The notes: generated by a model from the sequence alone, not told the origin. Shown: positions 3,012-24,605, counted from the stretch's first letter. The stretch: 64,000 bases of DNA from Zygnema circumcarinatum SAG 698-1b (GCA_037447605.1 CM074816.1:1-64000); one strand, 5' to 3'. A program made the numbers and translations.

Positions 3012-4283
3012 ATGGCGACCGGCGTCCTCCCTGGGGGGATGTGGGAGAGTCTCTTGGCCGCGCGAATGGCCACGTGTCAGCAGCAGCAGCAGCAGGCATC
3101 CATGGCGGAGGCCGTGGAGGGCTCGGCGCCGGAGGGGAGCGGGGAGGGGGACTTGTGGAGTCTCCTTTGCCGGAAGTTTCCCGGAAAGGTGAAGAAGGAT
3201 GCAGAGGGAGGTTCTGTGAAGAATCGGACGAGGGATCTCAGCTTCCTGGAAAACTCAGAGGATGAGAATTCGGGAGGGTTCAGGGAAGGGAGGGGTCTAA
3301 GCGGCTATAGCTCCTGTCAGACTGATGTCTCGCGGGACTTTGCGCACAGCTCTCCTGAAGCGAGCCACAACTCTGACGGCTCGACTGGCGGGAATCGGAG
3401 GGGGGTCAAGAGGGTACACGACGAATTGTTTGAATCTGAAACTCTCACAACGAGTAAAGTGAAGCCCCTCTCTAATGCCGAGCTCATGGCCACGTGTCTC
3501 GCTCTCATCCATCCATACAGAAAAATGCCATGGAATGGAATGGCGGCAAAGGGGAAACCAAATGCTTGGAGCGACGCATTGCGCTATGGGAAGGCTTCGG
3601 AAAGTGCCCCTGGAGGATCAGGAGGAGTACCTCACTCTAAGGATGGCAGGGCCTGCTGTGTCTTCATGTGTACTCATTTCGGTCTGCAGTGCAGCCAGAA
3701 TCAGTCCTCGGGCGCCGCTTTTCCGTCTCCTGATCCAATCTCCTTCGGACCCTTCCCGAGCTCGTGCCCGCCAAAGAGCAAAGAGTTTCTCTCCGCCGCT
3801 GATATGTTCTTCTTAACTATGGCCCGAGGGAACCGATCTTCCCCTTTGTTCCCTTCCATGGACTGGAACTCTCCCGATGAATTCTTCAATTCAGCACCTC
3901 ACTTTGCCGCGCAGTCCGCCCGGTCTAAGAAGGGAGCCTGCACCAATGCTTCGAGTGGAAAAGCTGATTTTCTTAATTCAACACATAGAAATGCGGTTCC
4001 AACGAGCCCCGGAAGTCTGTTCTCCATGTTGCCAGCGCAGAGATCCTCGGCTCAAGTGCTTCCGCCATTGAAGCTCCGAAAGAGAGAAGCCAACCCTAAT
4101 TTTTCGTCGCAGAGGAAGATTTCCATTGCTCGAGGCATGAAGAGAAACGCCAACGCTAAAACTTTTGCAGAGAAAGAGGCGCCGTTCTGGACACCGTGCG
4201 CTCTGACGGAACGGAGCCGCATGGATAAGCAGGCAGGTGGAGGGGGCTCGGCCGCTTACCTGGACTTAGAGCTGAAGCTTTGA
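3012..4283 (+). CDS. Intronless uncharacterised protein (423 aa) with C-terminal EAR motif; family member 1
   Basis: Long ORF. Shares GDLWSLLCRKFP, RGVKR, CCVFMCTHFGLQC and terminal YLDLELKL-stop with two paralogs at 13.3 and 18.1 kb. Confidence 0.8.
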   Translation: MATGVLPGGMWESLLAARMATCQQQQQQASMAEAVEGSAPEGSGEGDLWSLLCRKFPGKVKKDAEGGSVKNRTRDLSFLENSEDENSGGFREGRGLSGYSSCQTDVSRDFAHSSPEASHNSDGSTGGNRRGVKRVHDELFESETLTTSKVKPLSNAELMATCLALIHPYRKMPWNGMAAKGKPNAWSDALRYGKASESAPGGSGGVPHSKDGRACCVFMCTHFGLQCSQNQSSGAAFPSPDPISFGPFPSSCPPKSKEFLSAADMFFLTMARGNRSSPLFPSMDWNSPDEFFNSAPHFAAQSARSKKGACTNASSGKADFLNSTHRNAVPTSPGSLFSMLPAQRSSAQVLPPLKLRKREANPNFSSQRKISIARGMKRNANAKTFAEKEAPFWTPCALTERSRMDKQAGGGGSAAYLDLELKL

Positions 4284-5375
4284 ATAGGAACTGGTGGGAT
4301 TAATTGGCCGCGAAGAAACTTTCACGAGAATTTTGATACGCATTTTTTTATTCTATTAGTTCGTAATTCGTTTTGGGGTGGCTCTGGGGTCGCCGTCGAC
4401 ATCATCAACATCGTCATTCTCGATATTGACCGACATGGGGCGTAAAACAGGGTTGAGGTTTTGCAGGGGGTGTAAAGCACAAATTCTTTCAAAATTTCAT
4501 TCAATCTTCTGTAGGGAGTCACAGTGGCACCTTGAAAGGGTTCAGAGTCAAGAAACTTGTTGTAGAGTAGAAAAAAATCTGTGCTGTATAGCGAAGACAT
4601 GGTGGGGATTTTATCGGGGCAAGTAGAAACAGAGAACATAAGAATATCTACGACGTGAGAACAGAGGCAGATTGGATTCAGATTGTTTCATTTTTTTTTT
4701 TTTTTTTATAGCTGTAGAGTGTGCCGATGAAGACCAAGTGTGTGAGGCCATCATATTTGTTGATTACATTCAATTTTATTTAAAAAAAAAAAAAAATGGG
4801 ACCTAACTGAGTCATCTTGATTGTATATATGCGATTGAAACCAACGATCAGCACGAAGCACAACTAGACAACTTCCATCCATCATCATGTCAGGAAAAAA
4901 CGGAACATTTCCATTCACTTTTTTCACTGCGCATTTCTTAAGGTACAATACACTTTACATGCGGAACAAGTGTAAAGATCATCCCTTTCCACTCTTCCGG
5001 TTCACAAATTCTCCTGCACAGGTTCATACTGCTACAACTACAACTACTCCTTCTCCGAGTAGCATTCTCCATTCCATCTCCGATCTGTACGAAAGCAACA
5101 AAGAAACGAAAAGGGGGTGAGAATTAAGACGCAGACTAAGGTGTAAGACAAGCAAGCAACATCCTGAGCAACAAAAATTCACTTCATAAATGAAAGGAAT
5201 CTTGAAGCATCACCCCCTCAACACCCATTCATCCCTATCCTCGTACGCATCATCCCCTTAACAAGCATCTCGCCCGTTTCACCTCTCGAATGCCAAAGCC
5301 CTCCCTGAGAACTCCCCCCCCCCCACACCCCCAACGTGACGTGACGGGCGCGCGTACCAACCATTGGCGGTCCCC

Positions 5376-6327
5376 TCAGTTGGCCCCCGCGTGGTTCTTG
5401 GCCTCCTGCGCGGTGTGGTGCGCGGCGTCCTGAGTCCGTCCCGTCACGTCACGCGCTGCGTCCTGAGTCCGCCCCGTCGCGTCACGCGCTGCGTCCTGCG
5501 TCTGCCCCGTCATGTCGCGCGCCTTGTCGCCGGCCTGCCCCGCAGCGCCCATCACGTTGTCCTTCGCTGCACGGACAGACAGCCGCCATGAGGGGGGAGG
5601 CTGTCAGGAAAGATCGGGGAGTGGGAGAGGGAGTGGGGGATGTAGCAGGAGCGGGGAGGGAGGGGGCTTGTCTGACGAGGGCGGGAGGAGGGAGGGAAAA
5701 AGGGGGGGGGGGTGTTCAGATTAAAAGTGGAGAAGAGATGGGAAAGAGAGGCCTGAACGCACTAGAGGGCCAATTAAACGAGTCGTTTTCTAGAAGGAGA
5801 CTGAAATCTGCAATCGACACAGCGAGCGGCGGAGGGCAGCCCAAACTGGATGACGCTAGCATGACTCCATGGAACAGGTCTCGATTATGTGACGCTCACC
5901 TCCCTGGGCCATGCCCTTGACCTTGTCAGCCATCGACTGCACCCACAACCCGAAGCCCCACCATGTCCTCTCAAATACCCTCCATTCACATCATGACAGG
6001 TGGCAAGTGGAAGAGCCAACGACACCTCCAAATATCAACCCAAATCACCGAGAGTAGAAATGCCAGCGCATACGACAAACCACCTTGCAACCTCTTTTTC
6101 CCTCACAATCCCAAGGCCTTAAAAATCTCCCCTTTAAAAAAAGCAAGTACAAAAAGAAAACCCACGACCGAAATCAAACGCCCAACAGACCAACTGTTAA
6201 AGATAAAACGATAAAACCTATCTCACTCTAAATCTCGCAGTAGAAAGCCCTTTGTAACAACCGCCATAGCGATAGCCATTTGTGACCATATCAGGCATGC
6301 ATGGGTACATACCTCTTGTCCAGACAT
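5376..6327 (-). CDS. Group-3 LEA-like protein, copy A (80 aa, 3 exons)
   Basis: Exons 6327-6313 (MSGQE), 5936-5900 (SMADKVKGMAQG), 5566-5376, all GT-AG with consistent phases (243 nt). Three 11-aa repeats of the type xTGRTQDAARD; hydrophilic, Ala/Thr/Gln/Asp-rich. Confidence 0.85.
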
Positions 6328-7066
6328 GCTTGCTTTTGAGAGGGGAAGGTTCGCTCCGGACAGAAGGTGTGCGTTGTTGAGTGTTTGCGACTGAACAGAA
6401 AATTTCGCCCTTCAAACAACGCGCGCGGGCCTCCATTTTATAGGCGAAGGCGGCGCTAGAGGCGGGCGGGGGTTGGCCACGTGGCAAGTGCTCATTAGGC
6501 CGGTTCGGCCATGCCGGAATCCCGTGGCCGGCCATCCGATGCGGCCAATCAGAGGGCGCCAGGTACGGAGAAAGTTTTTCTTCGGGCAGGAACGTGACGT
6601 TCGCTGTTACGTTCTTCGAATGTCATCCCGAATTCTGCGTCGTGATTCGTCAAACGTTCTTTTTTTCCCTGCCCGAGTTTTGTGGAAACTGCCAGCTTAG
6701 CAGTTTCGCAGGATTACGTGTCGCCAAGTTTGAAGCCGAAGGTCTACAGCCAATAGCTTACCGCCACGTGAAGAATGTTTGTTTCACCTGGACCAATGGA
6801 ACGTCTCCATGTCAGCATATGTTTGGGCGCCATGTCATTCGCGCATGCGGATAGGTCAGGGGCTCTCAGGGCGCGACACGCGTTCTTGGACCTAGACAGC
6901 CAGTGCAGTCCTGCCACGTGTCCTGATTTTCACAGCGCGTCGGTGGCTCTGCGAGTGATAAAAGGGCCACTCCGCAGCACCAAACATCGACCATCTTCAG
7001 TGACTTGAAATTTACTCCTGTTCGTATTCTCTGCAACCTCCCGAGCTTTCTTCTTTCTTCGCGACG
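6328..7066. promoter_or_regulatory. Bidirectional promoter between divergent LEA genes, G-box/ABRE-rich
   Basis: CACGTG at 6478, 6765, 6915. ACGTGTC ABRE at ~6716 and 6916. CCAAT ~6545. TATAAAA on the minus strand ~6436-6442 and GATAAAAG ~6958 on the plus strand. Confidence 0.7.
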
Positions 7067-7873
7067 ATGTCGGGCCAGGAGGTAAAGGGAGCCGCTTTTC
7101 TGTCTAATGTATGCAAGTTTTTTGGGGTCTATGGCTGCAATGAGAGGGAAAGAAAAGATGGTGATTAGAGTTTAAGGCCTTGGGATATCTGAGGGAAAAA
7201 GTGGAGGTTGAAAGGTGGTTTGTCGTATGCGCTGGCATTTCTATGCTCGGTGATTTGGGTCGACATTTGGAGGTGTCGTTGGCTCGTCCTTTTGCCACGT
7301 GTCAAGATGTAAATGGAGGGTATTTGAGAGGACATGGTGGGGCTTCGGGTTGTGGGTGCAGTCGATGGCTGACAAGGTCAAGGGCATGGCCCAGGGAGGT
7401 GAGCGTCACATAATCAAGACCTGTCCCATGGAATCATGCTAGCGTCATCCAGTTTAAGCTGCTCTCCGCCGCTCGCTGTGTCGATTGCAGATTTCAGTCT
7501 CCTTCTAGAAAACGACTCGTTTCACTGGCCCTCTAGTTCGTCCAGACCTCTCTTTCCCATCTCTTCTCCACTTTTAATGCGCCCCCCCCCCAACCCCCCA
7601 CCTTTTCCCTCTTCCCGCCCTCGTCAGACAAGCCCCCTCCCTCCCCGCTCCTGCTACATCCCCCACTCCCTCTCCCACTCCCCGATCTTTCCTGACAGCC
7701 TCCCCCCTCATGGCGGCTGTCTGTCCGTGCAGCGAAGGACAACGTGATGGGCGCTGCGGGGCAGGCCGGCGACAAGGCGCGCGACATGACGGGGCAGACG
7801 CAGGACGCAGCGCGTGACGCGACGGGGCGGACTCAGGACGCGGCGCGTGACGCGACGGGGCGAACTCAGGACG
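7067..7873 (+). CDS. Group-3 LEA-like protein, copy B (truncated by assembly gap; probably the same locus as copy C)
   Basis: Exons 7067-7081, 7362-7398, 7733-gap. Identical to copy C at offset 1563. Confidence 0.6.
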
Positions 7874-7883
7874 NNNNNNNNNN

Positions 7884-9436
7884 CAGACATGCTTGCTTTT
7901 GAGAGGGGAAGGTTCGCTCCGGACAGAAGGTGTGCGTTGTTGAGTGTTTGCGACTGAACAGAAAATTTCGCCCTTCAAACAACGCGCGCGGGCCTCCATT
8001 TTATAGGCGAAGGCGGCGCTAGAGGCGGGCGGGGGTTGGCCACGTGGCAAGTGCTCATTAGGCCGGTTCGGCCATGCCGGAATCCCGTGGCCGGCCATCC
8101 GATGCGGCCAATCAGAGGGCGCCAGGTACGGAGAAAGTTTTTCTTCGGGCAGGAACGTGACGTTCGCTGTTACGTTCTTCGAATGTCATCCCGAATTCTG
8201 CGTCGTGATTCGTCAAACGTTCTTTTTTTCCCTGCCCGAGTTTTGTGGAAACTGCCAGCTTAGCAGTTTCGCAGGATTACGTGTCGCCAAGTTTGAAGCC
8301 GAAGGTCTACAGCCAATAGCTTACCGCCACGTGAAGAATGTTTGTTTCACCTGGACCAATGGAACGTCTCCATGTCAGCATATGTTTGGGCGCCATGTCA
8401 TTCGCGCATGCGGATAGGTCAGGGGCTCTCAGGGCGCGACACGCGTTCTTGGACCTAGACAGCCAGTGCAGTCCTGCCACGTGTCCTGATTTTCACAGCG
8501 CGTCGGTGGCTCTGCGAGTGATAAAAGGGCCACTCCGCAGCACCAAACATCGACCATCTTCAGTGACTTGAAATTTACTCCTGTTCGTATTCTCTGCAAC
8601 CTCCCGAGCTTTCTTCTTTCTTCGCGACGATGTCGGGCCAGGAGGTAAAGGGAGCCGCTTTTCTGTCTAATGTATGCAAGTTTTTTGGGGTCTATGGCTG
8701 CAATGAGAGGGAAAGAAAAGATGGTGATTAGAGTTTAAGGCCTTGGGATATCTGAGGGAAAAAGTGGAGGTTGAAAGGTGGTTTGTCGTATGCGCTGGCA
8801 TTTCTATGCTCGGTGATTTGGGTCGACATTTGGAGGTGTCGTTGGCTCGTCCTTTTGCCACGTGTCAAGATGTAAATGGAGGGTATTTGAGAGGACATGG
8901 TGGGGCTTCGGGTTGTGGGTGCAGTCGATGGCTGACAAGGTCAAGGGCATGGCCCAGGGAGGTGAGCGTCACATAATCAAGACCTGTCCCATGGAATCAT
9001 GCTAGCGTCATCCAGTTTAAGCTGCTCTCCGCCGCTCGCTGTGTCGATTGCAGATTTCAGTCTCCTTCTAGAAAACGACTCGTTTCACTGGCCCTCTAGT
9101 TCGTCCAGACCTCTCTTTCCCATCTCTTCTCCACTTTTAATGCGCCCCCCCCCCAACCCCCCACCTTTTCCCTCTTCCCGCCCTCGTCAGACAAGCCCCC
9201 TCCCTCCCCGCTCCTGCTACATCCCCCACTCCCTCTCCCACTCCCCGATCTTTCCTGACAGCCTCCCCCCTCATGGCGGCTGTCTGTCCGTGCAGCGAAG
9301 GACAACGTGATGGGCGCTGCGGGGCAGGCCGGCGACAAGGCGCGCGACATGACGGGGCAGACGCAGGACGCAGCGCGTGACGCGACGGGGCGGACTCAGG
9401 ACGCGGCGCGTGACGCGACGGGGCGAACTCAGGACG
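7884..9436 (+). other. Apparently identical direct duplicate of 6321-7873 across a 10-N gap (likely contig-overlap artefact)
   Basis: ORFs repeat identically at offset 1563 (e.g. 6473..6700 and 8036..8263). The duplicate starts exactly at the gap edge, in the middle of copy A exon 1 (CAGACAT). Confidence 0.8.
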
Positions 9437-9519
9437 CAGCGCGTGACGTGACGGGACGGACGCAGGACGCGGCGCACCACACCGCGCAGGAGGCCAAGAA
9501 CCACGCGGGGGCCAACTGA
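8630..9519 (+). CDS. Group-3 LEA-like protein, copy C (91 aa, 3 exons)
   Basis: Exons 8630-8644, 8925-8961, 9296-9519. MSGQESMADKVKGMAQGAKDNVMGAAGQAGDKARD followed by four 11-aa repeats, ending AKNHAGAN-stop. Confidence 0.85.
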
Positions 9520-12295
9520 GGGGGCCGCCAATGGTTGGTACGCGCGCCCGTCACGTCGCGTGGGGGGGGCGGGGGGGGGAAGGGGGGGCATATGTGGGGC
9601 TTGAACGTGGGGCGATGGTTCTCAGGGAGGGCTTTGGCTTTCGAGAGGTGAAACGGGCGAGATGCTTGTTAGGGGGGTGATGGGTACGAGGGTAGGGATG
9701 AATGGATGTTGCAGTACAGGCTGGTAAGGGCGAAAGTTAACGGGGAAGCAGCGATGGTTTGTGGGGGTAGGAAGAGATGGAGATATGGCGAGGGGGGAGA
9801 GGATGATATGGGTGTGGTGGGGTGAAGTGGAGAGTGGAAGGAGGGAGAGAAAGGGACGCGGGAGAGGGGGAGAGTGCAGAGGGAGAGGAAAGAGGCGAGT
9901 GTGGTATCGCAGACGGAAAAGGAAGGGAAGAGAAGGAGGGCGCATAGAAAGAGTTTGAGGGAGGATGGAACTGAGGGAAGGTAGAATCATGAAGAGTTGA
10001 ACTCAAAAGTAACTTCGTACTGTGTGTTCTGACGAGTTTCTGGTTTTCCATATACTGCAGGTCTGTTAGTCCATCTTGGAGCAGGCCGTGTACAGTCAAG
10101 AGAAACTTCAAAAGGAATTTCGCTGTTGGGGGTTGAGCAGAATTTTGTACATGGCAGATTGTGTAAAGTGTGTGGTATATTTCAGAAGTGACTCAAATGA
10201 AGCAAAAATGTTGTGTTCGAGACCATGTTGTGGAAAAAGATGACTTCCTACTTTTGTCACAAATGGCCAGTCACTTTCGTATTGTCGTCAATGGAAGCCA
10301 ATATGCTGATTGAATGGTTCGGTGCACTTCATTTAAACTTAAAAAATATATTTGGAACACTGAAAGGGTGAAAACCACTTAAAAGTCAGACATTTCGACT
10401 TAAACATCATTTTTATGCTGTTACAGCACATGTGAAATTTCTTACTGTCCATCACCTTATGCTTGCATTCAAACTTCTATTGGATTTCATCGCTAGTACA
10501 GGTCAACTTGTTGACATGCATTTTTTCACAGCTTCAAATATTTCAAACAGCCAGAAAAACTCGTTCACTTCTCTACCACTCAACATGTTTCTCCCTTCTC
10601 GTTCCCTCCACCCTCTTGCTCTCTCTCGCACTCACTACCTTTGATCTCTTTCTGAAAATCTCTCACCTTCTCTCTCTCCTAAATTTCCTGCTCCTTTTGC
10701 CACCCTAATCATAATTCTTCTTTGTTCTAATCTTTCCCGTCTCCTTTTCACCAATTCATCTTCCCTTCTTCCTTTCCAATCTTTCCATCCTTCCTCTCCA
10801 CTTCGCTCTCTCCATTCCATCTTCGTTTCACTCCACCCCACCCATGCTTCTCCTTCCACACCCCTATGCCTCCCTCTGCCACTTCCCTTCCTCCACCTCG
10901 TACTCGTCCTTACTCTCCTCCGCCTTTCCCATATGTTATCATCAATCCTTGTCTAACTGCACCCTCCCTCCCTCCCTCTTCCTCTTTATCTCCCTCTAAA
11001 GCCTGCCGCTTCTCTCTCTCTTCTCTCCCCTCCTTCCATCGCAGTCCCTCCACACTTCCACCCCTCCCCACTTCCTCTCCCTGCCCCTGCGTGTAAAAAA
11101 CCCTAAACTTCTATACACGTGAACGATACGATATAGTTGGCGATATTAATCGAGATAATATCGTCTATAACAACATATGAACGGAACGGAACGGGATGGG
11201 TCGACCTTTTACGGAGCGTTGGCCATATAGCGTGAAATTTATTTTTTTGTCTCCGTGAAACACAGTTCTGCTTGACAAACACGCCGTTCTTTGTTGACCT
11301 TCCAATGGCAGAAAGGTACAACGCTCAACAAGCATAGAGCAGATAGTAAATTCGCGGAAAGCTCCCTCGTTACGAGCAAGCGATGTGCGTTTGTCGTTTA
11401 GGGCGAGACCGCGAGAGACTCGGCTCTCCATGATGACGTCAGCGGACCATCGCAGTGACCGAAACGCCAAAGAAAAGTTTGCGTTAAAGCAGCCAAAATA
11501 ATTGGCATGGTAACGGCCAACGGTCGTACGAAAAACCGCCACAAGGAAACGATAAAACCCGTGATCGCATGCCCTTTCAAAACGACAAACTCCCTAACGA
11601 CCCGCAGAGACTCGCAAGGCTTTCTGCTGCAGTGCCGCCGATCGTTCTGCCGCCCAGCGGGGACACAATCGTACGAACGGGCCACTGGCGCGAAATTTTC
11701 CGGCGCCACAATTTGTCGTAAGTCAACGCCTTCAAATCAGCTGCGGTGTGGACGGAGTGCATGGAAAGGAGCTGTTCCGTCGAATGGAACAGCTTCCATG
11801 TATTTTTGACACGTGGTGGACTCCAAGTTCCACGTTGCGCGGCGGAAGCACGAAAAGTTGCGCTCGGGATCAACGCAGATCCGTGGGGGGTGGACTCGAT
11901 GAAATTTCGGAGTCCACGCTTGTGTCACGTCACGGACGACCGAGGCCCCGATTGGAATAAGTTTTATGGATTTTTCAATTTTCTGGAAATTCAAAGATGT
12001 GCAGAGAATCCGACGATTGCCGTAACGTCGAATTGCGATAAAAGTTTTTCGGGCAGGAAATTGTCCGCCGATTGTCGGGCCGTCGCGGTCTTTGTCGTGG
12101 ACGAAAAGTTTCGAAAGGGTCTACCCGAACGGGCAGATTTCTCAAGTTGTGGCACAAAACGACAGAGCAGTACGACAACATGTTGGTGGTATTGTATGGA
12201 CAATGTGTGCGAACGAACTTGGGATTTGCTAGCGCCCAAAGACGGGCGCCGTGGGTGGAAAAGTGGGGGGGGGGGGGGGGGGGGGNNNNNNNNNN

Positions 12296-12331
<36 letters not shown>

Positions 12332-13305
12332 CAAAAAAAGTGTGAAGGCGACCAATCGCTGGGCCGAGCAAGGCCTGTGATTTAGAACGGCGCAAGCTCC
12401 CACCACTACGCGGCCGCCACGTGGCATCTGAACGGCAGGGCTTCCGGCTGAGATTGCAACGCATGTAGCGCGTCGGATTTTTTTGAATTTTGAGGTTCCG
12501 TTCAACGGGACTGCGGGACGGCGGATGTGGCGCTGCCTGACATTGGCGTATCGCGCGTATCGTACGTATCGTGTATCGTGCATATCGTGAATTGACATGG
12601 AATCGTGATCTCGATCAGCTTGACTTGAACATGGCCTTCGTGCTTTTTCCAAAGCACACAAAATGTTGGAAGTTTTTAACCATTTGAAAGACCATGTGGA
12701 GTGTCATTTTTTAAAGTACTTGAACGACAACAGTGCCAGCATTCAGATGTGTTGTGAAAAGCAATGATAAGTTTTCCGGTCACGTCCATCCAAATGTCAT
12801 TTTCTGAAATAGAAGTGCTCATACAAAGGAGATAAAAAAAAATATAACTAAATAAACCCACCATGAACACTCGAGAGAATAACTGTTACTGAACAGATTG
12901 ACACATGGAACATGGACCTATGTGGCACTGGACATACTACGTTCTGTGTATTGTACAAGTTGAAGACATAAAATTAAACAAAATCAACTAATAAAACAAT
13001 AAACAATAATTAATCATTCCTGTCATACCCTATCCGAAGCTCGCGTACAATATGTAAGCAAGCTGCCTCCCTCTACCAAACTGCAAGAGATCAACAAGCT
13101 CCGTCCCTTCAACCTTACATCGGCCTATAGCAACTATCATATGCGGGCCAGTGCTGCTATTATTACACACTCACCGTGCTCCCTTGTTCGAAGCCATGGC
13201 GGAAAAAGAAAAAAGAAATAAAAAATCAACATAACGAGGCGCGTGATACAGTACAGGATGCGTCGATAGATGCTCACACTCCATACAGTTTATGAGCCCA
13301 AATCT

Positions 13306-14436
13306 TCAAAGCTTGAGGTCCAAGTCAAGGCGTGCAGAGCGGCTCTCCTCAGCCTTCATCGGAGTCCTTGACTTCATCATTTGCTGCAGTCCGGCACTCT
13401 GCTCTGCAACAGCAGCAGCAGATGGGGAATCACAAGGAGCCATGCGATAGCCAATTAACGATGTATTCCCTTCCATTGCAGACTCAACGAACTTCGCCGC
13501 CTTCACTCTCGGCGATCTGAAGCCATGGCTGCTCGGAGAGACCATGGCGGCGGCTTGCGCATCGCTGACGTGGGCAAGGAGGGGAGTCTCCGGGCTCGTC
13601 AAGCTCGAGGACGTGCTCCGAAGAATGCGAGGAGCGACGGGAATACGAAGCTTCTGAGAGTCTTCCGACGGCGTCTGCCATGCTTTGGAGGCGGATGGAG
13701 TGTCCCCATAGACACACGTGCGGCTAAACTGGGAGCACATGTATGGGCAGCAGGAGTCTCTCGCCGCGTCCTGCTTCCCTCGCAGCTGCTTCTCCTCTAC
13801 CCCGCCATGGCCGGAGAGCCTGCACTCGCTGGTTATGTCGCTGCGGCTGCTTAATGCCGAAAGCTCTGAGGCGATGCTTGCCGGGGGAGATGAAGTGGTG
13901 TTCCAACTGCAGTCGGCTATGGCTTCCGCTCCTCCCCCTCCTCCTCCACCTCGCCTACTCCGCCATGGCTTCCTCTCTGGGGGCGAAGAATGGTGCCGCT
14001 TTGGAGCGTGCCGGGGCTCCACAGAATACGTTGCAGACTCATACGGACGCTTCAGGCCCCGTCCAAGAAGGAGCTCTAAGTAGCTGTCAAGACGCCGACG
14101 AGTAAGAGGAGAGGCGCATCCCGCCATGGCCGAGTCCAAGGGGTGGCTGGCCCTGCGGCAGAAGGAGACACGTGGCAGGCCCTCGGCATTGTCCTCCTTC
14201 CTGGAATGGACCCAGCTGTTCGCATTTCCGTTCTCTCCAACGGAGGGCGGAGAAGTTGCCGCCATTGCAGGGAACTGGCGGCGGAGGAGACTCCAGAGGT
14301 CGCCTTCGGCAGAGAGGTCCTCGGGACTGCTGCTGCAGGCCATGGCCGCCCCCTCCTGCAGTGCCGCTTTCCTCGCGGCGAGGTGGGCTCTAAGGAAGAT
14401 GTCGCTTAACTGAGAGTGGGTGTGCGGGGACGTCAT
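13306..14436 (-). CDS. Intronless uncharacterised EAR-motif protein (376 aa); family member 2
   Basis: GDLWSLLRRQFP, RGLKR, CCPYMCSQFSRTC, terminal RLDLDLKL-stop. Confidence 0.8.
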   Translation of the reverse strand: MTSPHTHSQLSDIFLRAHLAARKAALQEGAAMACSSSPEDLSAEGDLWSLLRRQFPAMAATSPPSVGENGNANSWVHSRKEDNAEGLPRVSFCRRASHPLDSAMAGCASPLTRRRLDSYLELLLGRGLKRPYESATYSVEPRHAPKRHHSSPPERKPWRSRRGGGGGGGAEAIADCSWNTTSSPPASIASELSALSSRSDITSECRLSGHGGVEEKQLRGKQDAARDSCCPYMCSQFSRTCVYGDTPSASKAWQTPSEDSQKLRIPVAPRILRSTSSSLTSPETPLLAHVSDAQAAAMVSPSSHGFRSPRVKAAKFVESAMEGNTSLIGYRMAPCDSPSAAAVAEQSAGLQQMMKSRTPMKAEESRSARLDLDLKL

Positions 14437-14940
14437 TATTTCTCCTCCCTCTCCCTCCTTTCCTCCTTCCCTCTCCCTCTCCCTCTCCCTCTCCTCTCCT
14501 CTCCCTCTCCCTCTCCTCTCCCTCTCCTCTCCCTCTCCCTCCCTCTCCCTCTCCCTCTCCCTCTCCCTCTCCCTCTCCCTCTCCCTCTCCCTCTCCCTCT
14601 CCTCTCCCTCTCCTCCTCTCCCTCTCCCTCTCCTCCCTCTCCTCTCCCTCTCTCCCTCTTTCCTTCCCTCTCTCCTCTTTCCTTCCCTCTCCCTCTCTCC
14701 TTCCCTCTCTCCCTCTCCTCTCCTCTCTCCTCTCCCTCTCTCCCTCTCCTCCCTCTCCTCCCTCTCTCCCTCTCTCCTCTCTCCTCTCTCTCCCTCTCCC
14801 TCTCCCTCTCTCTCCCTCTCCCTCTCCTCTCTCCCTCTCTCCTCTCTCCCTCTCCTCTCCTCTCTCCTCTCTCCTCTCTCCTCTCCCTCTCCCTCTCCCT
14901 CTCCCTCTCCCTCTCTCCCTCTCTCCCTCTCCCTCTCCCC
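14437..14940. repeat. (CTCTCC/CT)n polypyrimidine tract immediately upstream of EAR gene 2
   Basis: About 500 bp almost purely C/T on the plus strand. Confidence 0.95.
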
Positions 14941-16176
14941 CGCGGTATATCAGTCCGCTTCAAGTGGCCCCACCCCGCCGGCGGCCGCCGACCGGCGCTG
15001 CGCCAAAAGGGCGCGTCAGGTTCGCCCCCTTTCGCCCGCCCGCCCGCCGCTTGGCCGGCCCCGCAAAGCCGCCGCGCGCCGCTCATCGGCTGCCGCCGCG
15101 TGACGCCTCGGGTCGGCGCGTCGCATAGCGCCGCGTGGCACCCCCAAATTTCCGCGCCATCTCTGCGCTCCGCCGGCGCTACGTGGCGCGATGGGAGCGG
15201 CCGGCGGCAGATCAGGCGCTGTAATAAGACGCACGTGGTGCGCTGGGCGGTCAAATGTGTCGTTTTCGGAAATCCCGGCTGGCATTATTGCGGGACCCAC
15301 TTGGCGGGGACATCAATGATAGCCGGCGTGACGATGCCGCAAAAGAGACAAAAAATGACGTAATTGGAGAGCAAGTTTGACGTCGTATATTGACAGGTTT
15401 GTCGTTACTCTCCTTGTAAGGACGAGACCACCGCGGGAAAATGAAGAATTTTGTACATTACCGTACAATAACGTACGGACAAGTTCAAGATCTGACAAAA
15501 GGTCCCTTTCGTACGGAGAGAAGTTTGTTGGATGGTGTACAAAAAGCTACAAGACATATTTTGTCGTTTAATGAGAAGGTCGTTGCGTGAAAGGCGGGGA
15601 ATGTACGGACCCAATCAGAAATTTGTCGGCAACCAATCAGCGAGCCCGGGCGGCATGACGTGCCAGCTGGCGGCCAAGCGTTCGAAGCGCCTTGCGCCGG
15701 AGCGATCGTAACAACCAATTGCGGCCTCGGCGGAGGAAACTGCCAAGGGCGGTTCCGTGTGGGAAAAAAGCGTTTCTCCACCGTTTTGTTCCAGTTTTAT
15801 TTGACGGAGCTAGAAGCATATATCAAGTCAGGTCTGCGTTTCCATGTCGTAGTTGCTGTGCCAGTTTTTTTGAAATTTGCTAAACCAGCCCGGTTTAGGT
15901 TTTCGCGCGGATAGCGGTGGGGAGGGAAGAAATGTTGGCCAATGAGAGCATGCCACGTCATAGAGAAGTGACAACTTGTGGCCACGTGGCAGAAGGTCGC
16001 ACCGCTTGCACCAGTGCTCGCCACGTGGAAGCACTCCTCTTCGTACGTTTTGTTTCGTTTCCAAGTGATATAGTTTTACCCCATTTTCGGGTGCGAACAG
16101 GGCCTAGAGCACATTTGAGTTCATTGGGACTTAAATAAGGTAGAAAATTGTGCGTAGTTCAACCTTAACTACAGTA

Positions 16177-16673
16177 CAGTCTACTCACGTTATAGTGACT
16201 GTGTCGTCCCCACATGTTTGTGTCACTATATACGTAATGACCCGTTTGTCATTTTACATTTATAGTGATAATGTTATTACAGATGTTTTTGCGGTATATC
16301 CGTACACCTTTGATCCCGTAAATTGTACTTTTTGGGCAGTCGTCTCGTGGGTAGGTGTCTAGTGTCTACGAACCCTAGTGAGCATGTGTACGGTCAAGTT
16401 GATGTGTACGGTCAAGTCGATATCTGACGGTATTTGTCGATAATGTGTACGACCGTAATATATTTCTAACGTATATTCCGATGCGTGGGTGGATAATATC
16501 GACATTTTGAATATATATAGTAACAATTAATTAGGGCTTTTCAAACGTCGTTATATCCGTAATGGCGTCACTATTGGCGCAGGATCAGCAGTGGTGCAAT
16601 TCCGTTCCCGGAAAAAACGTCAGTATATCCATGCTGTTATTATAAACAGTGTCACTATAACGTGAGTAGACTG
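16177..16673. mobile_element. Tc1/mariner(pogo)-type MITE, 497 bp
   Basis: Perfect 23-bp TIR CAGTCTACTCACGTTATAGTGAC at both ends, flanked by TA on each side (16175-76 and 16674-75). No coding capacity. Confidence 0.9.
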
Positions 16674-18066
16674 TACCCTGCTCGATATTGGGTATCCCCA
16701 ATACAGAGCGACGGATCAGTCAACGGCAGTCACGCGACGTCGCTCACGCAATGCGACGCACGCCATTGGCTGAGCTTCACTGTGCGACGTCGCATGTCGC
16801 ACTATGGGACGAGTAGGGGAGGCTTCCCTTTTGAAAGAAGGGAAGTGCGAGCAGAGGTGGGTTTTGTCTTTTTTAAATGGGTTTTGGGTCACTTTTTGCA
16901 TCTTTAAAATAGAATTTTCTGGGTCTCTAGTCTTTTCTTAATCTTGTTTTCTACTTTTACTTAGTTTTAAGAAAACTTCTTCACACTGTGTTTAGTGTTC
17001 AGCGTTAGACGAAACACGATCAAACTCGTCCACATTTTGAGAGGAGACTTGCGTGATGTGCGTATACTACGCCACTGTTGACTCGTTAAACTGAACGCAC
17101 GGAAAGCATAGTTCCTTAGGTATGTAACTTTTCACATCCTGTTGCAATCTTATAATATGAGCTGTGAGCAGTTTTGTTTTTGGGGGTGCTGCCAGGCAGG
17201 CAAGCTGACCATTTCAGCCCAACAGTAGGGAAGTGGTGGAAATTGAAAGTATGCTGCTGCATGAGGCTCACTTTGCTGGCAATAACAAACAGGTCTATTG
17301 CTGCTGCATCTCTCTGTTGAGAAACCCTGCAAGAGAGAAGATTGGTTTAGCTCCTCTCCCTCCCGGCGCCTAGAAACCTATCGTTCAGAACACGAATTAT
17401 TTTTGAAATAAAGAGAGGCTATAATTTACCCACGTTTGCAAAGAGTTAAGAGAGCATGCAGCAACTGTACCTAAGCTAAGCCGTATCTCTTCTCGAAAAG
17501 GGGCCAAAATTCTCTCAATATCCGAAACGGTGTCTTGGAATTCTCTTAAAGAAAACAGTAGCATGGAAAAAACCTCCGTTTTATGAGGGAGGTAGGTCAC
17601 CCAAGTGCGGATAAGGCAGGAAAAAGCAACGTTCTGAGTAACAGCCACAATTTAGATTCTTGACCTGTCAGGCTTGCATGAAGCACAAAAGGGCTCCAAA
17701 AACTCCTTTCATCGTACAGACCAGCATTTTCCTTCCAGCGACTGCTGAACTGCCGATTTAAATTTGTTACACATAAAAGAACAAAAATGAAAAAGGAAAG
17801 CAAAGGCACTTGTCGTGCAGTCTCTAAGCAGACACCAGCCATATCCACCCGACAATGTCAAAGACTTGAAAACGCCTTACGGACGAAAACGCGACTAAAA
17901 TTTACAAGGATTGAAGCAATGATCTATCGAGGCGTCCCGTGACTTACATTTACAAGCTTTCCCCAGCCCTCCTAATTCCCCGTTTTCGCTACAGAGGGAA
18001 GTCCTACAAGCTTCAATTCAGTTTCAAAAATGCGAAGCTCTTGACATTCACATAACTGCCGAGACC

Positions 18067-19194
18067 TCATAGCCGCAATTCAAGATCGAGACGACCTGAC
18101 GATCTCGATATCCTTCCGGCGTAGGGCTTCGGAGACTTCCTACTTTCACCGTGCTTGTCCTCCTTCAAAGCCACATCTTTGAAATCCTTCCTCTTCACTC
18201 GAATCCTTCCAACGTCTATGGATAGATGTTCCCGGCTACGGAGAGACCCAAATTTGGACATGTCTTTGTCGCTATGTCTCGATGAACGGCTGCCTGACCT
18301 CCCCGGAGGCATGGAAGAAGGTGATTCTGGGTAGGGCATGAGTAACATGGGGAGAGGAGTGTTTTGGGGGAACTTCATGGAGGGAATGTTGGAGCATCGC
18401 CGACCGAAGTGTTCGCACATGAGCATGCAACACGCGGTAACATTGTTCTCACTCAAGGTGCGGGTGGAGCTCCCTTCTTCGTTTCCAAGGCTCCTTGGGC
18501 GGGCGAGGCGGCTCGAGTCTCCTGCGTGGGGGGGTGACATTTTGGAGGACGTGGGACTTAGGTCGGGGAAATCCAACGTCGCTTGGAGGGGAGTGGAAGG
18601 AGAGGTTCCTCTCATGGCGTCCATTTCGGCGAGCAGCTTCCTTTCGTTGTAGAACGAAGATCGCCGCTTCATCGTGGGACTGAACTGAGCCGTCACATGG
18701 TCGTCGCTTACAGACCGTTTAACTCCCCGACATGGAGGCGGGGCCATGAGCTTCTTGCTCGTGTGGTTCGTTGACGGCGAGCTGGGCAGAGTTCCACGAG
18801 AGGATGGCGAAAAGGGGGCCGAGCCGAAGCCCTCCTTGGAACGCCACTCCTCCGCCATGGCCCTTCCGGCGTCCATGGCTTCGCTCCAGCCGCTAAAGTA
18901 TGGAAGAGTTCCATGCTGCTCCCACGGCCTCTCCGATGTGCTTGCAGCAGCTGCGGCCTCAGCCGCCTTGGCAGCCGCAATACGAATCTCAGCTAGGACG
19001 CCATCTCCCCTCTGCGAAGCGCTGACGGCGCCTGTGGAGCTTGAAGGAAACTGCCGACAAAGAATGCTCCAAAGATCGCCACGCGGCGCCACCTGCCGCA
19101 ACCCCATCTGCTCCTCCAGCGCCTGCTTCTGTACGGTCACCTGCGCCGCCAAAAGCGCGTCGCAGACAGCGAGATTAAGCGTGGGCGCCGCCAT
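18067..19194 (-). CDS. Intronless uncharacterised EAR-motif protein (375 aa from ATG 19194); family member 3
   Basis: GDLWSILCRQFP, RGVKR, CCMLMCEHFGRRC, terminal RLDLELRL-stop. The ORF track start at 19338 is a non-ATG codon; the first ATG is GCCATGG at 19194. Confidence 0.8.
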   Translation of the reverse strand: MAAPTLNLAVCDALLAAQVTVQKQALEEQMGLRQVAPRGDLWSILCRQFPSSSTGAVSASQRGDGVLAEIRIAAAKAAEAAAAASTSERPWEQHGTLPYFSGWSEAMDAGRAMAEEWRSKEGFGSAPFSPSSRGTLPSSPSTNHTSKKLMAPPPCRGVKRSVSDDHVTAQFSPTMKRRSSFYNERKLLAEMDAMRGTSPSTPLQATLDFPDLSPTSSKMSPPHAGDSSRLARPRSLGNEEGSSTRTLSENNVTACCMLMCEHFGRRCSNIPSMKFPQNTPLPMLLMPYPESPSSMPPGRSGSRSSRHSDKDMSKFGSLRSREHLSIDVGRIRVKRKDFKDVALKEDKHGESRKSPKPYAGRISRSSGRLDLELRL

Positions 19195-21004
19195 GGCTGC
19201 CGCCCTGTCCCTCCCTCCCTTCCTCTCCCCGCGCCTCCCCCTCCGGAGATCCCGTGAAAGCGAGAGGTTGCTGTGCCGCCGGCAGCGGGCTGCGCCCAAA
19301 TAAGGCGCCCGCCCGCCCAGCCCCTCACTAGACGACAATGCGCCGTACGGTCAGCGCGGCCCGCAGCTGGCAAGGCGGGTTGTTCGGCAGAAAAATCTTC
19401 CGAGCGGTTGACCCGGGCGGCCGGGAATTGAATCGGCCGGCTGGCAGGGCTCGCATGTGGATCTAGGATCAAGAATCGAGTCCAAATTTAGTGGATCTGA
19501 AGGGGTTAACATGGTGGATCTCGACTGTAGATCTGCACGTGTCCAGGGCCGCGGGCGGCGCGGAAATCTGGGGTCGTCCGTACGGAAGCAGAAGGGATGT
19601 CGCTTTGGGGAAGGTTCAGCGGACTTTGGCAGCGGCTAACGGCGTACGGATCACGACAGATGACGACAGGGAGGCGAACGCCTGATGTCGCTGGCAGATC
19701 GGACGGACGAGAGACGCCAGACTGGAAGCCAGCCTGGGGATGGCGTCGGCGCTGGATAGCGCTTAATTGGACTAGCTGAAAACGACAAAGTCTCTGGACC
19801 TCGGCAGCTGCAAAAAACCGACAGTACTCGCGATGCCACTTACAGCGGGCGGACGAGGATTTGGATTTACGAATGTATAGGTCGGTGCAAGTACAGACGA
19901 AGGTCGGTGCAGACAGACTCTGGCTGTACAGCCGACGCGTGGCGAGGATTTCTGGTAGTTGGCGAAAGGCCGAACCAAAATCTGCCACGTGGAGCAGCTC
20001 ACAGCCGCCAATCGTACGGAAGCGGCGCGCTGCGATTGGCTGCGACGGCGGGCGTTACGTGACAGCTGCGCGAGCGCGAGAATTCACGAGCGGGCGTTAC
20101 TTGAGGCAAGTGCGAGGCCCGTGATATCCGCGCGCCGCGTGCCGGGAGTGGGTGGAGCTCTATGTCCATGTGGGGCCAGTTGGACAGTTAAGAACGGGCA
20201 CCGCGACCAGGATGCGTATGACGCTGCTTAGCACAAACGTGTCAATATTTTTTGCGTGGTCATTGCAAGGAGTGCAAGGTCTGCATGGAAGGACTAATTG
20301 CTGGCTCTAGATGGGGGAGGAACTGAAGACAACTGAAAAACCTGTTTCGCAACCGCGTAGGCTGCGAATGGGGAGGCACCCGATTGGTGCCACTTTGAAA
20401 ATTATCCATTCTCGATACTATTAGCCAACCCTCTTAGTTGCTTTGCTCAACCAAACCTAAAGGATTCAAGATCGCCTTTCTCAAGCGTAACTTGCATTTT
20501 CTAACGGCATGTTTTCGTGAGTTTCTGCATCGCCCTCTCGGCATAGTTTATTTCCATTGTATCGGACGGTATCTCGATACGCATTGCATGTATCGAGGTA
20601 TCGACGTCCGCCAGTTCGCGACTCGCTGACCGTGACGGCTGTCACACTGCGCGACGGACCTCCGCCGACGTGGAACCACCGCCAATCGCGTGCCGCCACC
20701 GACACGGGCCGCGCTCACGTGGCAGCGCACGCCTGCGCCCTGCCGTCCGGCGGTCGCGGGGCGCCGACCGACCGACTGACCGACGGAGGTCCGCGCGGGC
20801 CGCAGCGAGCAAGTACAAGAGGCAGCGGGCGGCGGCGGAGAAGGGCAGGGAGGCGGAGAGGCGGAGAGGAGCCGGAGAGGAGGCGGAGAGGAGGCGGAGA
20901 GGAGGCGGAGAGGAGGTGGAGAGGAGGCGAAGAGGAAGTGGAGAGGAGGCGAAGAGGAGGCGGGAGGAGGCGACGAGGAGGCGGGAGGAGGCGGAGAGGA
21001 GGCG

Positions 21005-22072: not shown

Positions 22073-23136
22073 CCGTGCATCTCCCGCTTACCAGGAAATG
22101 GGCACTCGGGTTTCTTGGTTTGACAAGCTCCCAATTTGGCGTTATAGAGCTTTGGGGGAAAAGTCGAAATGAAAAGCCTCCTCCCTCCGAGCCAACATTT
22201 CCGCCTCACCTCCTCGCGTGACGTCACGCTGCCATCACGCAGCGGTTATATCGCCGCGGTCCATGCTTGGTTGCGATAGAATGCATGGAGCGACAAACTC
22301 CAAAACCACTCGCAATCGAGTACGACCCTCGCCTGCATCACTCCGAGAGGCCAAGCCGCCGCACCGACTGTGTGGGAATTGGTCTTTGTTCTTTGGTTGT
22401 CGTGGCAACTACGAATGTTTGGGGAATCTGCCCTCGAAGTGCATGCAGATACTTGTAACGGGAAACTGTCAACTCATTTTATTTGCAAGGCATCAATTGA
22501 TTCCTACAACCAGCAGTCCTCAAACGGTGCCCGCAAGTTTCGCAGCCGCTTGGACTTGCGGAACGGGCCGCCTCCTTCAGCACACGCGCTGCCATCATTT
22601 GCATTCTCGATTTTCCTTTCGGCCAAACCTGGCAGCCGTCCCCCGCCCCCACATGGAACCGCAGTTTGGCGCCGCCCCGCCCTCGCGAGTATCGGCATAT
22701 CGGAAAGCCTCTCGCGGGCACCCGATGCAGCCACCGCGTATCGAAACGCCGATACGCTACTGTCCGAACGATATCCCGATATTATGGGCGACCGTCCCTG
22801 TGACGGCTGTCACGCCACTCGCCAGAAATAGGCATGGATATTGTATTAGCATTCCAATCAATCAGCACTCCCGTTTTCCAGGAAGCTTCGGCGGGTCCAA
22901 CACGCGCACGAAACATGGAGTCCCATGGTTGAGCATGCGCATGCACGTTGGTGGCGATGTCCACGTACGCGTGGGCCATGCCATTATCCTTCATAATGTG
23001 AATTAACAGCGTTCGTATTCATGCACAACAACAACATGCCCACTAACGACATGGTTATAGCAATGTTGGCATGGTTCGCAGAGGCGGATCAAGAGTTTTC
23101 GCTGTGGAGACTATGCCCTCCCTCAATATAAGAAAC

Positions 23137-24605
23137 GGAGAACTATATACCGCCCCCCTTTTTTGGTTATCCCGCCACTGTTTTTTTGAAATCCTACCCT
23201 CGCATTTCGGCTATTCTGCCCCCCTCCCCCATTTTGGATATTTCGGGAGGAGATCGCCCCCCTGTTTTGAATATTTCTTTCCCGCCCCTCCCGTCCTCTA
23301 CCCTCCCCTCCTCTGCCCTCCCCCTCCTCTCCCCCTCCCCTCTCGTCCNNNNNNNNNNCCTTCTTCCTCTCGGTTTGCAATCTCCACACAAATGACTGAG
23401 TATAAGACTCGCGATGAGCTTGTACAAGTCTTGACGAAGCATTACAAGCAGGAAGGATTTCACATCAAGATTGGCAAGCATAGCGATAGCCGCCGACTCT
23501 ACATGCAATGCTTTAGCGGGGGGACCTACGAGGACAGAGGTCTGGAAGAGAGTAGTAAGAAGAGGAATACTTCCAGCCGCTTGAAAAATTGCCCTTTCGA
23601 GATCAGGGCGACGTTTTCCGAGAATAAGGACATGTGGGCTGTAAAATCTGTCGTTGAAGAGCACAACCACGTCATTTCCACTGGGTATGCTGAGAAAAGG
23701 CGCTTAGACATTCACGAGAAGGAATGTGTTCGGGAGATGGCACAAAAAAATTTATTCTCTTTTTATCCCTTTTTCTTTTGGTGGGTGTGAAGCTCTGTCA
23801 TGATGTAATGGTTGGCTTGCTTGCTCGCTCTCTCTTCTCTCTCTCTCTTTCTCTCTCTCTCTCTCCTCTGCTCTCTCTCCTCTAGTCTTTCTCTCCTCTA
23901 CTCTCTCTCCTCTGCTCATTCTCTCTCTCTCCTTTGCTCTCTCCTGTGCTCTCTCCTCTAGTCTCTCTCTCCTTTGCTCTCACTCCTCTACTCACTCTCT
24001 CTCTCTCCTTTGCTTTCTCCTCTGCTCATTCTCTCTCTCCTTTGCTCTCTCCTCTAGTCTCTCTCTCCTCTACTCTCACTCCTTTGCTCTTTCTCTCTCC
24101 TCTATACTCTCTCTCCTCGGCTCTCGCTCCTTTGCTCTCTCTCTCTCTCTCTCTCTCCTCTGCTCTCTCTCTCCTCTAGTCTCTCTCCTCTGCTCTCTCT
24201 CCTCTAGTCTTTCTCTCCTCTACTCTCTCTCCTCTGCTCATTATCTCTCTCTCCTTTGCTCTCTCCTCTAGTTTCTCTCCCCTTTGCTCTCTCTACTCTA
24301 GTCTTTCTCTCCTCTACTCTCTCTCCTCTGCTCATTATCTCTCTCTCCTTTGCTCTCTCTTGTGCTCTCTACTCTAGTCTCTCTCTCCTTTGCTCTCACT
24401 CCTCTGCTCACTCTCTTTCTCCGTTGCTCTCTCTCTCGAACGTTGCGCTGATGTGTGAAAGGAGAAAACGGGGGGGGGGGGAATATCCAAAATGGGGGGG
24501 GCCGGATATTTCAAAACAGGGGGCAGAATAGCCGAAATGGGAGGGTCGGATTTCAAAAAAACAGTGGCGGGATAACCAAAAAGGGGGGGCGGTATATAGT
24601 TCTCC
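23137..24605 (+). mobile_element. Non-autonomous Mutator-like element (MULE) with FAR1-type transposase fragment
   Basis: TIRs of about 100 bp or more starting GGAGAACTATATACCGCCCCCC. 9-bp TSD ATAAGAAAC at 23128-36 and 24606-14. The paralogous arm has the empty site once (34972-80, reverse strand). Confidence 0.92.
23392..23790 (+). pseudogene. FAR1 DNA-binding-domain-like N-terminal fragment of a MULE transposase
   Basis: EGFHIKIGKHSD...RNTSSRLKNCPFEIRATF...WAVKSVVEEHNH matches the FAR1/MULE C-P-F...W...HNH pattern. No DDE domain follows; CT repeats follow instead. Confidence 0.75.

Follow-up and report, generated by a model that had tools for sequence, protein, structure and literature searches.

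Three clustered genes in a streptophyte alga encode putative EAR-motif adaptors that may recruit TOPLESS

TOPLESS (TPL) and its EAR-binding groove are older than land plants. To our knowledge, adaptors that connect TOPLESS to transcription factors (Aux/IAA, NINJA, and SPEAR/TIE) have been described mostly or only from embryophytes. The land-plant SPL/NZZ (PMC4650584), TIE (PMC12349606), and SPEAR (PMC9880897) proteins have an N-terminal partner-binding part, a nuclear localization signal (NLS), and, at the C-terminus, an EAR motif, without a DNA-binding domain. Their N-terminal helical part binds TCPs, and the EAR at the very end recruits TPL/TPR (PMC4650584, PMC12349606, PMC9880897). The NOZZLE domain (Pfam PF08744/InterPro) was an inclusion criterion in one of these studies (PMC9880897). 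SPEAR/TIE proteins have been reported only from embryophytes, and a pre-embryophyte, algal origin was explicitly left open (PMC12349606). For the EAR motif itself, Ke et al. (2015; PMC4646777) tied a four-leucine pattern with Asp at +2 to binding by the TOPLESS domain, and DLELRL by itself is enough for repression (PMC4646777).

We analyzed a 64,000-nucleotide stretch of DNA from Zygnema circumcarinatum (the window), in which an initial annotation had reported three intronless ORFs. All three are present: gene A (3012..4283, plus strand; 423 amino acids), gene B (13306..14436, minus strand; 376 amino acids), and gene C (18067..19194, minus strand; 375 amino acids). The ATG of gene A is in a GCCGCCATGG context and its stop is TGA. 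The first ATG of gene C is GCAGCCATGG, 5' of which the frame is open as far as a TTG at 19338. The ATG contexts of genes A and C are Kozak-like. In all three proteins, the N-terminal helix contains an aligned L-x-A that Met1 precedes by exactly 14 residues, and in all three ORFs a TGA directly follows LDL[ED]L[KR]L. Because start and stop are both in register with the motifs, we consider the three coding sequences to be complete and intronless. Two assembly gaps (7874-7883 and 12286-12295) are intergenic, at distances of over 3.5 kb to A and roughly 1 kb to B, and neither interrupts any ORF of the family.

As first described, the three proteins share four short blocks in the same order. Each ORF has one copy of each block, and a six-frame search found no further copies elsewhere in the window. 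The GDLWS[LI]LxRxFP block occupies residues 46-57 of A (GDLWSLLCRKFP; 3147..3182, plus strand), 45-56 of B (GDLWSLLRRQFP; 14269..14304, minus strand), and 39-50 of C (GDLWSILCRQFP; 19045..19080, minus strand). In A it is a predicted short helix that holds LxxLL and WxxL cores. The basic block is RGVKR at residues 130-134 of A (3399..3413, plus strand), RGLKR at 126-130 of B (14047..14061, minus strand), and RGVKR at 156-160 of C (18715..18729, minus strand). Next comes CCxxMCx[HQ]FxxxC, a Cys/Met block, at residues 215-227 of A (CCVFMCTHFGLQC; 3654..3692, plus strand), 229-241 of B (CCPYMCSQFSRTC; 13714..13752, minus strand), and 255-267 of C (CCMLMCEHFGRRC; 18394..18432, minus strand). The last block is the putative EAR motif, LDLELKL in A (4260..4280, plus strand), LDLDLKL in B (13309..13329, minus strand), and LDLELRL in C (18070..18090, minus strand). 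An N-terminal LLAA had also been listed; it is literal in A and C, but B has FLRAHLAA. Three-way 7-mer scores were 113, 101, and 84, whereas 20 shuffles reached no more than 68. The RGxKR score was 69 (null, 52 +/- 4), a value that 1 of 300 shuffles reached. The sharing of the four blocks by these predicted proteins exceeds chance.

Protein A has two more WxxL-like copies, GGMWESL (residues 8-14) and GSLFSML (residues 334-340). The conserved DLWSLL core also fits the LxxLL and WxxL Atg8-interacting motif classes.

Pairwise identity of the proteins is 26-30%. Their BLASTP matches to each other are collinear, with E values of 1e-7 to 6e-6 at the N-terminus and 1e-7 to 3e-3 at the Cys block. Judged from these alignments, A, B, and C are old paralogues in a tandem cluster. 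No DNA-level repeats connect the three loci, and a transposon or segmental-repeat origin was rejected for this reason. In the blocks (37 codons), the nucleotide identities at the three positions of a codon are 0.70-0.73 (first), 0.86-0.89 (second), and 0.27-0.41 (third), and at least two different codons are used at 22 of the 24 invariant block residues. Third positions are thus near saturation while second positions are 86-89% identical. Therefore, the block motifs are under protein-level purifying selection, as assessed among three paralogues of one genome. A codon-usage (RSCU) comparison used two neighboring coding stretches, a reference too small to inform.

AlphaFold models of A and C are mostly disordered (mean pLDDT of 44.4 and 46.8, respectively), with short helices at the N-terminus, at DLWSLLCR, and at the EAR. 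The sole confidently predicted element is an N-terminal helix (pLDDT 78-85), which agrees with the initial annotation. This amphipathic helix spans residues 8-35 of A (3033..3116, plus strand; pLDDT 82-85) and 8-29 of C (19108..19173, minus strand; pLDDT about 78). The proposed C-terminal EAR is textbook LxLxL with Asp at +2, and its fourth leucine is at +7; the last seven residues of each protein have Leu at +1, +3, +5, and +7, the sequence pattern given in PMC4646777. An NLS had been suggested as well, and RG[VL]KR is followed 14-15 residues on by a second basic cluster, K[RV][RHK] (KVK 14 residues downstream in A; KRH and KRR 15 residues downstream in B and C), so that the conserved pattern looks like a bipartite NLS. 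This pattern differs from the KRGK reported for TIE (PMC12349606). Pfam recognizes no DNA-binding domain in A, B, or C, again as first proposed. The LxLxL pattern is short and leucine-rich, and a TPL-binding role for it is read from sequence alone.

In the explanation that we favor, and to which as a whole we give about an even chance, A, B, and C are genuine coding genes and paralogues, members of a family that is restricted to one lineage and found here in a streptophyte alga. Their products would act in the nucleus as adaptor-like co-repressors that lack a DNA-binding domain and recruit TOPLESS by a C-terminal four-leucine EAR. Each protein would carry short linear motifs on a largely disordered chain of 375-423 amino acids, in the order N-terminal amphipathic helix, GDLWS[LI]LxRxFP mini-helix, bipartite-like NLS, Cys/Met-rich amphipathic segment, and EAR. 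The N-terminal helix and the DLWSLL motif, perhaps together with the Cys segment, would bind a partner, for which a DNA-bound transcription factor is the most plausible candidate. Docking of the C-terminal EAR in the TOPLESS-domain groove of the alga's TPL co-repressor would silence the partner's target genes.

A different role for real genes is unlikely, but it has some claim. The terminal LxLxL might not recruit TOPLESS at all, and the [WF]xxL/LxxLL core might be what acts, for example in an Atg8-binding (AIM/LIR-type) cargo adaptor or in a regulator of a nontranscriptional partner. Acidic residues precede the W-x-x-L core in GDLWS[LI]L, and the two extra copies of the pattern in protein A are consistent with this. 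Also, we infer from a seven-residue motif and the overall architecture that the proteins are nuclear, bind TPL, and repress, and what their partner is. However, conservation reaches past the WxxL core to LxRxFP, and the W is preceded by Leu, which is unusual for canonical LIRs (xLIR pattern). Furthermore, despite synonymous turnover, the last seven residues remain an EAR with four leucines and Asp at +2, and the conserved basic clusters suggest nuclear import.

The family was described as new in the initial annotation, and as far as our Pfam, word, profile, metagenome, and literature searches reach, A, B, and C have no relative. Pfam gave no accepted domain, either for the full-length proteins at E <= 1 or, at E <= 10, for these and their terminal parts. 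HEPN_SAV_6107 aligned to the N-terminal helix of B with E values of 0.03-0.11, at 13-15 bits against a 27-bit cut-off, and was taken as chance. Word-index searches returned no match for full-length C, and 26 candidates for residues 12-60 of B, none of them scoring. An HMM search was done with a three-sequence HMMER profile against 1.84 billion representatives, and there were no matches at E <= 1e-3, the self-hit included. None of A, B, and C is on record by exact-product look-up. The same was true of control ORFs from the same window: an HRGP-like ORF was not found by exact look-up, the only search made with it, and an ORF with an L7Ae domain was not found by exact look-up or word search. Because the controls were not found either, the missing self-hits say nothing about annotation or expression. 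It appears that the genome's own proteins are absent from those collections or that the control gene models are wrong. Since these proteins seem absent from the libraries searched, close algal kin may exist. When JGI metagenomes were scanned with the block patterns in back-translated form, 98 matches came up but none was confirmed, and a literature search for the block motif strings found nothing relevant. The ESM Atlas had no convincing neighbor, and its "recognition" values were low. The three best named clusters in its feature search were SPOROCYTELESS-like/NOZZLE (scores of 0.78-0.79), a weak lead.

These leads bear on whether A, B, and C are very divergent algal homologues of land-plant SPEAR/TIE/SPL-NZZ proteins, which we consider quite improbable. 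Such homology would account for the same overall architecture, including a DLELRL-type EAR at the extreme C-terminus, and for the finding that nine of the ten best family-bearing Atlas matches are SPOROCYTELESS-like/NOZZLE. It would also fit the algal origin left open in the TIE study (PMC12349606). However, Atlas scores of 0.78-0.79 are within a range often reached by shuffled proteins. The profile found no land-plant protein at E <= 1e-3 among the 1.84 billion representatives, and the motifs that the papers name for SPEAR/TIE do not include the GDLWSLL or CCxxMC block. Membership in SPEAR/NOZZLE was rejected with hmmscan: A, B, and C, whole or as terminal parts, do not match PF08744 even at E values up to 10.

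The Cys/Met block had been put forward as a possible small Zn-binding module, and this part of the initial annotation is not supported. Four Cys are invariant, as are the Met and the Phe, but B has Gln in place of the His of the other two proteins. Helical structure is predicted for the block with low confidence (pLDDT about 47-64); in C, it is inside a predicted helix at residues 245-263 (pLDDT about 63). If it is a helix, the conserved offsets 0, 1, 4, 5, 8, and 12 (C, C, M, C, F, and C) are within a 140-degree arc and so make up one face. Because the conserved residues are all on one helix face, a single-ion intramolecular site does not fit. With this geometry and a His that is not invariant, a Zn knuckle is unlikely. 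CC-type (class III, ROXY) glutaredoxins have a glutaredoxin fold with a CC[ML][CS] active site. This class was rejected, because there is no Pfam glutaredoxin match and the Cys block is in a predicted disordered/helical context.

The block could instead be a metal- or redox-sensing switch of the adaptor, using Cu(I), Zn, or a disulfide, possibly between two chains. We think this doubtful. It is not exclusive of the adaptor explanation but is a refinement of it. Four invariant Cys with Met, Phe, and a His in two of three proteins would suit such a switch, as would their position on a single face if the block is helical. In addition, the GTAC-core (SBP-box/CuRE-type) sequence CCGTACG is 8x over-represented in the window, with 16 of 25 copies upstream of A, B, and C, although the boundaries of these upstream regions were set post hoc and GTAC clusters are also intergenic elsewhere in the window (41-43 kb and 59 kb). 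Counting against a switch are the Gln of B, the low confidence of the block models, and the adjacent Cys-Cys with residues 12 apart on one helix, which leaves no classical single-ion site.

It is hardly credible that the ORFs are nonfunctional, either as frames that arose by chance in low-complexity, GC-rich DNA or as pseudogene copies in decay: GC-rich stretches of the window also yield long meaningless frames (e.g., 14416-15363 and 40887-42137), the exact look-ups gave no expression record, and the ESM recognition values are low, but three frames of 375-423 codons have stayed open over 1.1-1.3 kb despite near-saturated third positions in the blocks, where identity is so much higher at second positions, the four motifs keep their order and their register relative to the start and the stop, and the collinear BLASTP matches among the proteins are significant.

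If A, B, and C are adaptor-like co-repressors, then this family, known to date from a single genome, provides concrete candidates for TPL deployment before land plants, from an alga close to land plants. GDLWSLLxRxFP and the Cys/Met block are likewise new as conserved motifs, and both can be used to find partners directly. A more speculative idea, and one we would not expect to be correct, is that these proteins belong to a pre-land-plant stock of TOPLESS-recruiting adaptors without a DNA-binding domain, as algal kin or forerunners of SPEAR/TIE, with the Cys/Met segment perhaps supplying a switch that responds to metal or redox state.

Among known systems, SUPERMAN-type C2H2 repressors, the source of the SRDX DLELRL, have a C-terminal motif nearly identical to LDLELRL (PMC4646777). 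However, SUPERMAN binds DNA by its C2H2 zinc finger, whereas Pfam detects no zinc finger or other DNA-binding domain in A, B, or C. Membership in that family was rejected because zf-C2H2 and all other Pfam models were unmatched. As proposed here, A, B, and C would resemble NINJA/AFP and Aux/IAA in being EAR-bearing bridges between a transcription factor and TOPLESS. NINJA/AFP and Aux/IAA differ in having an N-terminal EAR and defined partner domains (the NINJA C domain and PB1); NINJA/AFP membership was rejected on the C-terminal EAR of A, B, and C and the lack of a Pfam match. A, B, and C have no detectable sequence similarity to SPEAR/TIE proteins, and their profile retrieves no land-plant protein. 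They have GDLWSLLxRxFP and CCxxMCxHFxxxC, whereas the known motifs that the papers name for SPEAR/TIE are an NLS, an SPL-motif or helical region, and an EAR. At about 190 amino acids, TIE1 is roughly half the length of the algal proteins. Even so, A, B, and C are like SPEAR/TIE/SPL-NZZ in being mostly disordered, in lacking a DNA-binding domain, and in having a predicted N-terminal helical part and an EAR at the very end of the protein, and their conserved basic clusters may be an NLS.

The initial annotation placed three intronless ORFs with four shared blocks in this window, and all three were found: A (3012-4283, plus strand, 423 aa), B (13306-14436, minus strand, 376 aa), and C (18067-19194, minus strand, 375 aa counted from the first ATG). 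Overall identity among their products is 26-30%, and a MAFFT alignment has 45 invariant columns, with a concentration in the four blocks. From the N to the C terminus, these are GDLWS[LI]LxRxFP, RG[VL]KR, CCxxMCx[HQ]FxxxC (the Cys/Met block), and LDL[ED]L[KR]L (the EAR motif). A six-frame regular-expression scan found each block once per ORF, in the constant order that had been described, and no further copy in the window. The "LLAA" wording used for the first block is literal in A and C but not in B. By BLASTP, collinear and significant pairwise matches join the three proteins over the N terminus, with E 1e-7 to 6e-6, and over the Cys/Met block, with E 1e-7 to 3e-3. Three-way ungapped 7-mer scores were 113 for GDLWSLL, 101 for ACCxxMC, and 84 for LDLELKL, against a highest score of 68 in 20 shuffles. 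For RG[VL]KR the score was 69 (null, 52 +/- 4); when the inter-block segments were shuffled 300 times, a single shuffle attained that score. In all three ORFs, an aligned L-x-A of the N-terminal helix lies 14 residues after the initiator Met, and TGA directly follows the EAR motif. Because Met and stop are in register with the motifs in each case, the coding sequences are complete and intronless.

Purifying selection on the shared blocks had been named as a check, and a codon-position contrast among the three paralogues revealed it. Across the 37 block codons, the fraction of nucleotides that two paralogues share is 0.70-0.73 in first, 0.86-0.89 in second, and 0.27-0.41 in third codon positions, and at least two different codons are used for 22 of the 24 invariant residues. 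Third positions in the blocks are near saturation, yet the encoded residues are kept. Therefore, the four blocks are under purifying selection at the protein level. The reading frames are open over 1.1-1.3 kb, the start context is GCC(G/A)CCATGG in A and C, and a TATTTG element lies approximately 100 nt upstream of each. No DNA-level repeats joining the three loci were found, which rules out recent copies or transposon parts. Exact-product look-ups of A, B, and C in public collections returned no match. Two control ORFs of the window were likewise unmatched, so this blank is uninformative, and the collections apparently lack the proteins of this genome.

The window is nuclear DNA of a eukaryote, with a full-length U1 spliceosomal snRNA gene (42531-42691, minus strand; Rfam RF00003, 129 bits) and genes of several exons, among them one for an ammonium transporter; no tRNAs were found in it. 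Two assembly gaps (7874-7883 and 12286-12295) are intergenic between A and B and touch no family ORF. The first falls precisely where the two copies of a perfect 1553-bp tandem duplication meet (6321-7873 = 7884-9436, 100% identity); the duplication is probably an assembly or scaffolding artefact. Long inverted repeats also frame this region (5219-9711); examples are 5420-5693 versus 9169-9442 (98%) and 5702-6094 versus 7204-7596 and 8767-9159 (93%). The second gap is inside a poly-G run of >50 bases (in the stretch 12250-12330) and is likely a homopolymer sequencing failure. An ORF with a FAR1/AFT-type DNA-binding domain (23071-23790, plus strand; Pfam E 4e-11), its frame broken by an assembly gap at 23349-23358, is a possible transposase-derived factor or Mutator-like element. 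An L7Ae/L30e-type domain (E 1e-5) is at the C terminus of a 337-aa ORF (29779-30792, plus strand), for which the word search gave no relatives and the exact-sequence look-up no record.

Two DNA motifs recur upstream of the three genes. The 10-mer CACGTGGCAG, an extended G-box, is found at -533, -1556, and -797 of A, B, and C, respectively (2479-2488, 15983-15992, and 19982-19991), and has 11 sites in the whole window versus 0.08 expected. ACGTGGC (G-box/ABRE-type) has 49 sites versus 5 expected, and the G-box-type element looks like a genome-wide promoter element. The peptide MATC occurs twice in protein A, both times encoded across the G-box-like GCCACGTG. CCGTACG (GTAC core, SBP-box/CuRE-like), often as the palindrome TCCGTACGGA, has 25 sites in the window versus 3 expected. 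Sixteen of these 25 are upstream of A, B, or C (700-2160, 15472-15516, and 19343-20019), in regions delimited after the data had been seen, and more clusters are at other intergenic spots (41-43 kb and 59 kb). For both of these reasons, shared regulation of the three genes is at most suggested. A purine microsatellite of the (GAGAGG)n type, approximately 510 bp long (14437-14950), adjoins the gene B ATG on the gene B sense strand and gives rise to long spurious ORFs on both strands (14416-15363 and 14436-15254). A shorter CT-rich tract is right before the gene A ATG.

Ser, Ala, Pro, Gly, and Arg are abundant in all three proteins. AlphaFold2, given the three-sequence alignment, returned mean pLDDT values of 46.8 (C) and 44.4 (A). 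Its confident prediction is a helix at the N terminus (residues 8-29 of C, pLDDT ~78; residues 8-35 of A, pLDDT 82-85), and short helices are predicted at DLWS(I/L)LCR and at the terminal EAR motif. These models predict intrinsically disordered proteins with short linear motifs. RG[VL]KR is followed 14-15 residues downstream by KVK, KRH, or KRR, and the pair resembles a long-linker bipartite NLS in its sequence. Protein A has two more degenerate G-x-[LM]-[WF]-x-x-L copies: GGMWESL at aa 8-14 (3033-3053, plus strand) and GSLFSML at aa 334-340 (4011-4031, plus strand).

The Cys/Met block had been proposed as a small Zn-binding module. AlphaFold2 made it a helix in C (245-263, pLDDT ~63) and, in A, a helix in part only. 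If it is a helix, its conserved C, C, M, C, F, and C (offsets 0, 1, 4, 5, 8, and 12) span a 140-degree arc, which places them on one face, and its His is replaced by Gln in B. Therefore, a classical intramolecular Zn knuckle is unlikely, and the proposed module is unsupported. The block may serve as an interface or, between chains, as a metal or redox site.

Pfam had no match to the whole proteins or their terminal parts, and word-index searches found no relative. A profile search of 1.84 billion representatives gave 0 hits at E <= 1e-3, a metagenome pattern scan gave no confirmed match, and the motif strings were not found in the searchable literature. The family is so far unrecorded, with one genome in hand. 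The initial annotation saw an undescribed family of repressors or adaptors; the blank Pfam, profile, metagenome, and literature searches agree with this, and EAR adaptors are plausible; the Zn module is not supported. The only pointer came from the ESM Atlas: among named clusters, its feature search ranked three SPOROCYTELESS-like/NOZZLE clusters as the top neighbours at 0.78-0.79, values that shuffled sequences often reach according to the tool. Therefore, these neighbours are a lead, not evidence.

The C termini conform to the LxLxL sequence definition of an EAR motif, as had been claimed: leucines occupy +1, +3, and +5, a fourth follows at +7, and +2 is Asp. The three leucines of an EAR motif enter a groove of the TOPLESS (TPL) co-repressor domain, the +2 residue and an optional fourth Leu raise affinity, and DLELRL by itself is enough for repression (Ke et al. 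2015, PMC4646777). Land plants have EAR adaptors without a DNA-binding domain, namely SPL/NZZ (PMC4650584), TIE (PMC12349606), and the SPEAR family (PMC9880897). Because of these EAR determinants and precedents, we favour adaptor-like co-repressors, at roughly even odds. The N-terminal helix and the DLWSLL motif, possibly helped by the Cys segment, would engage a partner, for which TCP and SBP factors are natural candidates, and the C terminus would recruit TPL. This putative function is read from one short motif; beyond a selected disordered protein with an EAR-type end, we infer the whole mechanism, both partner binding and TPL recruitment.

The SPEAR family is defined by an NLS, an SPL-motif, and an EAR motif at the C terminus (PMC9880897). 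Pfam found no NOZZLE domain, the criterion for SPEAR membership, in A, B, or C, whether scanned entire or as terminal parts, so we do not file them under SPEAR. The TIE study reports no algal TIE and leaves a pre-embryophyte origin open (PMC12349606). A distant relationship of A, B, and C to SPEAR/TIE is quite improbable. They may work like a SPEAR/TIE protein.
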